Below, piece by piece: positions 47,601 to 63,613 of a stretch of 64,000 nt of DNA (position 1 is the first letter of the stretch; each line of letters begins with the position of its first letter). This stretch comes from Octopus sinensis (Eukaryota), in the NCBI RefSeq assembly GCF_006345805.1, contig NC_043001.1, positions 86,304,001 to 86,368,000 of the forward strand, written 5' to 3'. The position numbers and the translations under genes were made by a program. Below the pieces are notes generated by a model, which was not told the DNA's origin, ran no database searches, and worked only from the letters and a program-made list of their open reading frames with translations.

Positions 47601-50600
47601 ACATTTATGATAGACAAGGATGAGGATCATCGACTTAACTCTCCTCTGCCTCACCATGATAGAGGATCACCCGAAGAAGATGTACAAGAACTCTCTAAAC
47701 AAATCCATTGGCCTCTATCACGTTGATTGTTCTAGTGATTGACTGCAAAGACTGACGTCTCTATGCCGTCCGGGTAACGGCCTTCTTTGAAGATATTGGC
47801 AGAACCCTCCTTGCAGACCGATGGTAGGGTATAGAGGAAAAACAAAGACGCTATGACCAACCCTAATCAGCTCACCTTTCCACCGTGTAGTATTACATTT
47901 GCTTGATTACTCTACAACCTTGGCTATTTTCACAATTCTTGAAGTCTTCTGATAATAATAATAATAATAATAATAATAATAATAATAATAATAATAATAA
48001 TAATAATAATAATAATAATGATAATAATAATAAAAATAATATTAATAATGATAATAATAATAAAAATAATATTAATAATAATAATAATAATAATAATAAT
48101 AATAACAATAATAATCATAATAATAATAATAATAATAAAAATAATAATAATAATAACAATAATAACAATAATAATAATAATAATAATAATAATAATAATA
48201 ATAATAATAATAATAATAAACAATCTAAACGTAAGAAATGTAGTGTCAATGATGGAAATATTTCATGTATTGTTTCCTTATTGATATTACTGTTGTTCTA
48301 AAACTAATATTCTTGTTTTTCACAGTATAATTTCGTAACTCCATTAACATCAATGGTTGTCACCAAATACCAAGTGAAAGAAGAACTCTTTGGAGAAGGT
48401 AATTTTATCATTCATATTTTAATGACAAGCTCCTGAGGTCAGGATAACGAAATATTTAAACTGAGATGACTTTACCATATAAGTCTTGTTGAAATGAATT
48501 TGTTATGATTGTTTGTATCATAAAATCTAAAACTATATGTTATTATTATCTAAATGTATCCATGATTGCCATGTGCAACAGCTAGATATCAAACGTTCAG
48601 CTCTGCAATGATTACTCTAAAAAATTTAGCTCAACTATACTAGATTTCGTTTCATAGCATTTTCGCTGAAATCAGGAACGCTCTGTCTGCTGTTTCTGCT
48701 TCTGTCCTCTTACTGCCGTCTTCTGATGTCTGTCATCTACCGTCTTCGGGAGTGACCAAAATGCGCTGAATATAACGAATATACTGCTCAGAAAAAGCAC
48801 CCCAAAGATATGATTGGTGTTACATCTGGTTCGATACAAAATCATGAATGATCAGAAATTTTGATGACGTAAGAATATTCTAGCGCATTACAATCGTATA
48901 CTTAAGTTGCAGTTTTTTTCCTTGTTTTGCATGGGATATGGTGATCTGGGTTTGATTACTAAATATTCCTGCTATATAATTAAATTGTACGTGCTATGCA
49001 ATAGAGCAATAACTAATTGCAAAATTTATTTTGACAATATATATAATACTACATTGATTATATTTTAGAATGATCTAGCAAACATTTTCAGTCTAATTAC
49101 TGTCTTAGTATGTATCATACGTTATACCCTAAATAAGGAAAAATTGTTATATTTAGGAAATTGTTAAAAAAAAGTTATAAACTGTTTTCTCTAAAACTGA
49201 TATATCTGCTGGTACAGTTTTCGTTTTATTCTACTATGTTATACTAATACTGTTACTTTCAGACCGTTATTACAATTTTCAATGTGTTTCTCTTCCATTA
49301 TAGAAAATTTTGTACCTTCTCTACGTCCACGTAAGTATATTAAAATTTGGATTGTTTGAAATAGCTATATAATAGGATCTCTTTCAAAAACCACTTCAAG
49401 TCATTCATAAAACAGACGACTTATTTTGCTTTGCGATGTAGCTAGGATTCTTGCTTGTTTGTTATTTTGATATGTAATGGTCATGAAGCACAAGACCAGT
49501 TTTATTAGGGAAGTGGTATAGGAAATCCAACTAACTCCAGTGTATAAATGTAGATTATTTTATCGAACCGGTGGAGACATAAGATAAAGTCTAATGACTC
49601 AGCTGAAAGCCAGATCCATCTCAAATGTGGCTTACAGCCTTTTTTCTTAAACTCCAAATCGGCAATATACGGAAACCGAAGTAAACCGCAAAATATGAGC
49701 TCATCACACTTCGCATACCTTGCATAACGTAAGCTGATTTCGTCTAAAACTGGGCCAAGTACTTCAGGTCATAATTCTTGGAAGTCCTTTGAAAAAGATT
49801 AGAGAGACAAGACCATGATCGAAGTCTAGAATTTCTCCCATATCAACCATGCCTGCAAGTAACTCTCTATGAATACGTGAATTCTCCTCCCCTCGAATAA
49901 TAATAATAATAATAATAATAATAATAATAATAATAATAATAATAATAATAATAATAATAATGATGATGATGATGATACTAATAATAATAATAATAATAAT
50001 AATAATAATAATAATAATAATAATATATTATACGTGTTTGTAAGTCCTGGTATTTTTGTTATGTATTTGTCTGATAAAAAAATATTCAGACAAATACATA
50101 ACAAAAATACCAGGACTTACAAACACATATAATATTCAGAAAATTGCACTACTGGGCACTGCCCACATCCTACGCAGAACACTTTCAATACAGTAACCAT
50201 CAGAGCATCACAACAAATCACAGCACATACCCAAGGCACACAGAGCTGCGCTCGGTAGTGAAGTAAAAGTACGTTATAAAGATAAAGCTACTGAATGATA
50301 ATAATAATAATAATAATAATAATAATAATAATAATAATAATAATAATAATAATAATACCTACGCAGAGCACTTTCCATACAATAACCATCAGAGCATCAC
50401 AACAAATCACAGCACATACCCAAGGCACACAGAGCTGCGCTCGGTAGTGAAGTGAAAGCACGCTATAAAAATAAAACTACTGAATAATAATAATAATAAT
50501 AATAATAATAATAATAATAATAATAATAATAATAACAAAAGCACATGAAAATTTAGCTAGCAGATGGGAACAGAAACCTCTCCATGGCAAGTATGTGGCC

Positions 50601-63613: not shown

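Follow-up and report, generated by a model that had tools for sequence, protein, structure and literature searches.

To our knowledge, nothing is known about ITIH proteins outside vertebrates, and the demonstration that human ITIH4 inhibits proteases after activation by cleavage is recent. Soury and colleagues are said to have described, in 1998, a species-specific structure and synthesis of the ITIH4 proline-rich region. Here we describe an ITIH4-like gene of Octopus sinensis, most of which lies within a 64-kb stretch of genomic DNA (G000:C5:86304001-86368000, in a genome of 2.72 Gb and 13,516 contigs; hereafter the window, to whose first nucleotide plain coordinates refer). The gene has the architecture VIT + VWA + linker + cephalopod C-terminal domain, and an array of micro-exons, m1 to m8, encodes its linker and follows the final exon of the ITIH head (E0).

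Vertebrate ITIH4 (PK-120) is among the closest described systems. The protease-susceptible region of ITIH4 acts as a bait, after which a metal- and VWA-dependent inhibitory complex is formed; this region is strongly variable between species, like the A2M bait, and the cleavage-plus-complex mechanism is known for human ITIH4 only (Pihl et al. 2021, PMC7793589). The octopus linker resembles the proline-rich region of vertebrate ITIH4 in that it belongs to the same family, lies directly after the VTPLTSMV motif, is Pro-rich and highly species-variable, and is without the DPHF coupling consensus. Among bovid ITIH4 isoforms, too, a small cassette, there of 17 aa, distinguishes the proline-rich regions, and the metal ion-dependent adhesion site (MIDAS), which the ITIH4-protease complex requires, is conserved. 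Unlike ITIH4, the octopus linker is split into 7-8 micro-exons of 15-66 nt, built by tandem duplication, a number that rises to at least 17 in paralogs, and the domain after it is shorter, cephalopod-specific, Cys-containing and unrecognised by the Pfam model ITI_HC_C (PF06668). The octopus linker is likened to the ITIH4 bait region from sequence and a structure model, whereas cleavage and inhibition were seen for ITIH4.

In mollusc and arthropod TEP/A2M proteins (BgTEP2, CfTEP, Drosophila TEP2), bait or hypervariable regions are diversified by tandem alternative exons (PMC7016707). Octopus ITIH shares with these proteins secretion, an exposed, fast-evolving central segment and duplicated alternative exons, and in TEPs the segment is cleavable. 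The families are unrelated, and Pfam found no A2M or thioester domain in the octopus protein. The exons of TEPs exclude one another, so that each transcript has one, and are of larger size, whereas octopus isoforms string several array exons together and skip them independently. The micro-exon genes (MEGs) of schistosomes resemble the octopus array in their runs of symmetric micro-exons, long introns, secreted disordered products, skipping without frameshift and accelerated evolution. Symmetric, skippable exons and isoforms are present in octopus as well (256 of 256 inclusion patterns open, five isoforms of an ortholog); however, the coding region of MEGs is mostly micro-exonic, whereas micro-exons make up 210 of ~2,530 nt (~8%) of the coding sequence of octopus ITIH, a large multidomain protein whose other exons measure 73-690 nt. 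There is no sequence relationship between octopus ITIH and MEGs. Full-text literature searches returned nothing on micro-exons in octopus or cephalopod ITIH genes, and the octopus array is already implicit in public gene models.

Results

Anatomy of the micro-exon array

The array spans 15 kb downstream of the conserved YNFVTPLTSMVVTK exon and consists of eight exons of 27, 27, 24, 18, 15, 18, 15 and 66 nt, each of which is symmetric (phase 1-1) and has C or G as its last base. E0 (48326-48398, 73 nt, YNFVTPLTSMVVTKYQVKEELFGE; tblastn) ends in phase 1, and its motif was unchanged in 30 ITIHs. It is followed, all on the + strand, by m1 (49304-49330, 27 nt, (E)NFVPSLRP), m2 (52542-52568, 27 nt, (Q)KYLPSLHP, read from the sequence), m3 (54718-54741, 24 nt, (L)GYYAPNI), m4 (56051-56068, 18 nt, (P)HFPDP), m5 (57357-57371, 15 nt, (R)TNVL), m6 (58258-58275, 18 nt, (D)HLLQQ), m7 (61226-61240, 15 nt, (H)PMRA) and m8 (63548-63613, 66 nt, (A)PSHRVPHTASTGYLPPFPHSP); the next exon, GILIKPLNCSS..., lies on the same strand at 65812-65918, 1.8 kb past the window. 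Donors across the array are strong (GTAAGT, GTGAGT, GTATGT or GTAAGA), and a pyrimidine-rich tract precedes all eight micro-exons, with an AG acceptor in seven of them and AA at m4. We are highly confident of this anatomy, in which every item of the original prediction (eight exons, with their lengths, coordinates, phase, splice sites and peptides) was present.

All 256 inclusion patterns of m1-m8 between E0 and the next exon were stop-free and gave 256 distinct peptides, which bears out the earlier claim that no skipping combination produces a frameshift or a junction stop. Because all exons are phase 1-1 multiples of three, the spliceosome can skip the cassettes independently. The chance prior of eight lengths all being multiples of three is (1/3)^8, and a rule-based scan for open phase-1-1 candidates returned six on the + strand of the 17.4-kb interval and none on its - strand, compared with ~7 in the other 106 kb. 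Chance AG...GT open segments as the origin of the exons were ruled out by these scan counts and by the orthologous use described below. Full read-through yields a linker of 71 residues, 21% Pro and with 7 His, whose composition is Pro/His/Leu-rich, with 5 Ser and with Thr outside the eight commonest residues; internal repeats in it are limited to the exon duplicates. An Rfam scan of the window gave no match.

Use of the micro-exons in related octopuses

The Octopus bimaculoides ortholog is 86% identical and has five RefSeq isoforms (XP_014784808-12) that are identical outside the linker and differ by skipping of the m4, m6 and m7 equivalents and by nothing else. X1 contains all seven orthologous micro-exons, X2 is without the m7 equivalent, X3 without m4, X4 without m4 and m7, and X4 of an earlier annotation release (823 aa) without m6 and m7; m7 is thus skipped in three isoforms and m6 in one, m5 is present in all, and all four combinations of m4 and m7 presence and absence occur. 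Comparison with orthologs, which the original prediction had proposed as a check, showed that seven of the eight exons are kept in O. bimaculoides (locus L015), with equal length, phase and donors and inside annotated proteins, and that six are used in Octopus vulgaris. These same-length, same-phase, same-site orthologs in annotated O. bimaculoides proteins argue decisively, at the level of sequence, that the exons are real. The O. vulgaris protein CAI9723174, a fused three-gene model nearly identical to the window gene, includes m1, m2, m3, m6, m7 and m8 and skips m4 and m5. At its m3-m6 junction (54741 / 58258) the model reads ...APNI-N-HLLQQ, where the window sequence would give H (C+AT); either the final base of m3 differs, or the O. 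vulgaris model made another splice choice.

Variation in any model was limited to m4, m5, m6 and m7; m1/m2, m3 and m8 were always included. Combinatorial skipping is thus documented for three or four exons, in relatives only, and isoform diversity in O. sinensis, as judged from these relatives, is probably real. The notion of a combinatorial array therefore stood as regards independent cassette skipping, seen in the O. bimaculoides isoforms, and did not stand as regards its size: the proposed 2^7-2^8 variants are not supported, since only m4-m7 are seen to vary, and m4 is without an AG acceptor in the O. sinensis genome. The figure of 128-256 forms is a theoretical upper bound.

Duplication and divergence of the array

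Self-comparison of the + strand paired the m1 block (49025..49590) with the m2 block (52269-52829) over 568 bp at 91% identity, the m4 block (55986..56609) with the m6 block (58192-58805) over 641 bp at 74%, and the m5 block (57223-57406) with the m7 block (61091-61278) over 192 bp at 79%. As read from these sequence pairs, the array is shown to have grown by tandem duplication of exon-plus-intron blocks (m1/m2, m4-m5/m6-m7). The block identities indicate an old duplication of a two-exon unit, common to O. bimaculoides, in which m6 and m7 are the old duplicates of m4 and m5, and a young one that made m1 and m2; the latter is not found in O. bimaculoides, which has one exon of the m1/m2 type.

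Introns are 87-93% identical between O. sinensis and O. bimaculoides, so conservation alone is no proof of exons, and the keeping of frame, indels and exon-versus-flank rates were used instead. The 183 nt of the seven orthologous micro-exons contained no indels, compared with 3.6 expected from the flanks (P=0.03), whereas mismatch between the species was 13.1% in micro-exons and 7.7% in flanks (Fisher P=0.016). Of 25 codon changes in the linker relative to O. bimaculoides, 20 were non-synonymous; the amino-acid difference was ~25%, and omega was 1.34 for the linker, compared with 0.23 in the head and with 1.26 in the C-terminal domain. Between paralogous exons of the array, BLAST-anchored counts gave 17 mismatches where the flanks predicted 7.8 (P ~0.001), and frame, length and splice sites were kept after ~25% divergence of the m4-m5/m6-m7 blocks. 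The absence of indels together with the excess of mismatch indicates fast turnover of the encoded sequence within exons that retain their frame and splice signals. Such a pattern in the sequences fits diversifying selection on the linker exons, at small numbers of changes.

Several repeats lie in and around the array. E0 and the m1/m2 duplication are bordered by long stretches of (AAT)n, located at 48000-48219, 49896-50025 and 51491-51658, and a zf-RVT retroelement fragment (50484-50918, + strand) is located between m1 and m2. Just 3' of m8, at 63780-63970, is a ~185-bp repeat with more than 60 genome copies at 75-79% identity, which looks like a SINE-type element (short interspersed nuclear element).

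Family membership of the gene and structure of the linker

The gene extends on the + strand from its start codon at 23572 (located by tblastn with the best homolog) to the window end at 64000 and continues past it (23572..64000; tblastn of the O. bimaculoides ortholog, with VIT and VWA from Pfam). The VIT and VWA exons lie between 26333 and 35603, and the last of them is a large post-VWA exon of 690 nt (34915-35603; both tblastn, + strand). A 12.6-kb intron, part of whose sequence derives from repeats or retroelements, precedes E0. Three C-terminal exons follow the array beyond the window (G000:C5:86369812-86369918, 86374490-86374756 and 86375213-86375350, + strand; tblastn), and the gene ends 7.35 kb past the window. 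Upstream of the start codon, an intergenic RVT_1 fragment (14152-14712, - strand, E 8.5e-20) and a weak RVT_1 match (8566-9180, + strand) were observed.

In the reconstructed protein, Pfam identified a VIT domain at residues 30-141 (PF08487, E 7.1e-25) and a VWA domain (PF00092, E 2.3e-17), pieces of which (FMLDVSGSM, TNINAAL, LTDGDPT) are read in the window. The MIDAS residues D281/S283/S285/T352/D382 (ortholog numbering) were unchanged across 30 ITIHs. Vertebrate ITIH3 and ITIH4 were among the homologs, with E values of ~1e-90 to 1e-124 across the first ~600 residues. The AlphaFold2 (AF2) model of the O. bimaculoides ortholog, used in place of the window protein, matched the human ITIH1 crystal structure 6FPY with E 3.4e-54 and a TM score of 0.77 over 589 columns. 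Membership of the gene in the ITIH family is supported by VIT, VWA and the ITIH1-like fold of the ortholog.

A VTPLTSMV(V/I)TK motif on one side and the C-terminal domain on the other bound the linker. The equivalent interval of bovine ITIH4 is the proline-rich region, in which annotated bovid isoforms differ by the 17-aa cassette, and the earlier placing of a Pro-rich segment at the position of the ITIH4 protease-susceptible region is upheld by a Pro content of 21% directly behind the VTPLTSMV motif. The AF2 model of the ortholog gave residues 598-652, which include the E0 tail and most of the micro-exon-encoded stretch (606-662), a predicted local distance difference test score (pLDDT) <50 and no secondary structure, and the modules on either side were confident; it thus predicts a disordered linker with a folded module at each end. 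After the linker, the DPHF (DPHFII-type) coupling consensus is not present, the window reading ...PHSPG|ILIKPLNC, whereas Mytilus homologs have GDPHFM at the corresponding place. The missing consensus, unlike the situation in ITIH1-3, makes the octopus protein ITIH4-like in that respect.

The C-terminal ~165 residues form a β-rich, Cys-containing domain common to cephalopod homologs, among which four Cys are unchanged. Identification of this domain as ITI_HC_C was not supported: hhalign of cephalopod against bivalve plus bovine sequences gave E 0.28, with a short LC...LL.D..GV motif alone aligning, BLASTP against bovine ITIH4 was non-significant, and a whole-genome scan with ITI_HC_C gave no match at the ITIH4-like locus.

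Lesions and annotation in O. sinensis

The post-VWA exon contains a 1-nt deletion (35383-35386, + strand, at ~35384) that breaks the frame in this assembly, the window reading AACTG-TGGGGG where O. bimaculoides has AACTGCTGGGG. The O. vulgaris and O. bimaculoides proteins are intact across this site and read TNCWGF; the deletion must have arisen either in the assembly, as an error, or very recently, as a lesion. The m4 acceptor is a normal AG in O. bimaculoides, where m4 is alternative, and AA in the window therefore represents a lineage-specific loss. From its sequence, m4 is probably dead in the O. sinensis genome.

The original prediction had also proposed that the exons were missed by automated annotation. 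For O. sinensis this was correct, as no model contains them, whereas the O. bimaculoides RefSeq and O. vulgaris annotations do. The O. sinensis RefSeq protein P0132 (1,136 aa) is chimeric: its first VIT block is identical to window exons 29322-29775, and the remainder is the downstream paralog (G000:C5 ~86386972 onward), whose VIT region is duplicated. Since Gnomon dealt well with the micro-exons of this downstream neighbour, the missing O. sinensis model more likely results from the frameshift than from exon size. The annotation gap is probably due to the frameshift and the chimeric model, and not to the micro-exons themselves. With its chimeric or split O. sinensis models, the locus is useful as an annotation case.

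Tandem paralogs and other cephalopods

At least three paralogs, the ITIH4-like gene among them, lie here in tandem, and 19 kb separate the window from the start of the next one. Across ~58 kb of the downstream paralog, at least 17 micro-exons occur, all phase 1-1 and 15-24 nt long (G000:C5 ~86420496-86478783; 116496-174783 in window coordinates, beyond the window), an array far larger than m1-m8. Its units include EYLPS, RFENQ, AIVIH and VKDQEPEF, as well as the repeated PEAEI, GHGSDI and AARHF, many of them duplicated, and its micro-exons are used in O. sinensis and O. vulgaris models. The upstream paralog has its last coding exon (...EFQCIEKPPNQMVLSNKTGLYNKVSYHNATGSLSHCFRM) at 383..520 on the + strand (tblastn), and its C-terminus is annotated separately in RefSeq as 'uncharacterized protein LOC115211872'. 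Duplicated micro-exon candidates, for example GLPPS and GPHGQSSNF, were found in this paralog between -24241 and -8072. Within the upstream paralog (followed to ~-25000), an 8-kb segment that takes in a large linker exon and the one after it occurs twice, at -14288 and -6076.

In assembled Logan transcripts of a more distant cephalopod ITIH, the corresponding linker occurs with and without a clean 48-nt insertion, phase 1-1 and ending in C; the forms with and without this cassette come from sister sequencing runs. Together with the paralog arrays, these transcripts indicate that cassette micro-exons in the linker are a family trait in cephalopods. The Mytilus ITIH isoforms X6 and X7 differ at the signal peptide and are alike in the linker, and linker splicing is therefore not universal in molluscs. 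A second class of cephalopod ITIH transcripts (Logan P0012-P0015, P0156-P0165), of ~650 aa, ends in a hydrophobic tail, …SGSRLFPFVFSWLSLSISLL, soon after VTPLTSMVVT, a sequence that suggests membrane- or glycosylphosphatidylinositol (GPI)-anchored forms without the C-terminal domain.

Discussion

An array of symmetric micro-exons, built by tandem duplication, encodes a linker, predicted to be disordered, between the VIT-VWA head and the C-terminal domain, and we propose from the relatives that independent cassette skipping would yield secreted isoforms differing only in linker length and sequence. The linker would be an exposed, cleavable segment, in which splice and paralog variants may offer proteases different cleavage sites. 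Given the position of the ITIH4 protease-susceptible region and the intact VWA metal site, a cleavable segment appears the most likely use. By analogy with ITIH4, a bait function of the linker is possible rather than probable, on the grounds of positional homology, intact MIDAS, disorder, rapid change and diversification among paralogs. Taken as a whole, a spliced, duplication-built micro-exon linker array with a putative bait role is the explanation toward which we lean.

Several observations weigh against this explanation. We know of no invertebrate ITIH shown to inhibit a protease, and ITI_HC_C gave no Pfam match at E<=1 in the reconstructed protein. Neighbouring paralogs have linkers of another kind, either acidic, with PEAEI repeats, or mucin-like and rich in Thr, a composition that does not resemble a common protease bait. 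An omega near 1 is also expected of an unconstrained spacer, and with the C-terminal domain at 1.26, fast change is not linker-specific. Evidence for isoforms comes from RefSeq models, which are computational and belong to another species, O. bimaculoides. Neither a transcript nor a protein of this O. sinensis gene was found: a collection of 5.8 billion proteins contained no O. sinensis protein with the linker, and queries with the C-terminal 262 residues, once within the full protein and once stand-alone, returned only the O. bimaculoides ortholog and paralogs. Finally, with the frameshift and the dead m4 acceptor, this copy could be decaying.

The spacer just mentioned would need only to be flexible and in frame, with duplication, drift and skipping tolerated, not selected, and the variants amounting to splicing noise that lacks distinct functions. 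Its predicted disorder, the unrelated composition of paralog linkers, the divergence of the exons, which is about as great as that of introns or greater, and the omega of ~1.3 from 25 substitutions, which is indistinguishable from 1, all accord with neutrality. We nevertheless consider it unlikely: whether species or duplicates are compared, the exons changed significantly faster than the introns beside them; reading frame, exon length and splice sites outlasted the ~25% divergence of the m4-m5/m6-m7 blocks; and cassettes of like design are seen again in bovid ITIH4 and in a second cephalopod.

The linker might instead be a glycosylated or matrix-binding stalk, either an extended tether that may be O-glycosylated or a repeat governing how far the head reaches, or how it binds, in mucus, ink or extracellular matrix, and its splicing would tune length and not cleavage sites. 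Related cephalopod ITIH linkers do contain Thr-rich runs or PTRPTYTTT repeats, the downstream paralog has its PEAEI repeats, peptides of cluster paralogs were reported from O. vulgaris ink (PMC10142993), and vertebrate ITIH1-3 are matrix proteins (PMC7793589). The linker itself, however, is Pro/His/Leu-rich with few Ser and Thr, has no internal repeat except the exon duplicates, and is not followed by the DPHF glycosaminoglycan-coupling consensus of bivalve homologs, and we regard the stalk as improbable. Still less probable is a young pseudogene in O. sinensis, with the array a relic here and functional in relatives, to which the 1-nt deletion, the change of the m4 acceptor from AG to AA, and the lack of a stand-alone RefSeq protein, some exons having been absorbed into the chimeric neighbour model, would point. 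Single-base indels are a common error of long-read assembly; moreover, this frameshift is the only one in ~2.5 kb of coding sequence, the head has an omega of 0.23, all other exons are open with intact splice sites, and the near-identical O. vulgaris protein reads through the deletion site.

If the spliced linker array does serve as a bait, octopus ITIH4-like genes might diversify it in three tiers, namely gene duplication, micro-exon duplication under diversifying selection and combinatorial skipping. This extension is speculative and we rate it as rather unlikely, as we do the same system seen, by analogy, as independent in origin from the A2M/TEP bait-exon arrays and parallel to them in function. 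In cephalopods, as this cluster shows, the segment equivalent to that of ITIH4 is alone within the protein in having been duplicated exon by exon, in being variably spliced and in changing fastest, a pattern otherwise of A2M/TEP bait regions. A handful of isoforms and paralogs, differing only in a linker of 20-170 residues, is available, which makes the locus a testable system for asking whether the ITIH4-type mechanism, with its diversification, predates vertebrates. If true, the three-tier system would equip cephalopods with ITIH4-type protease traps whose repertoire can be tuned.

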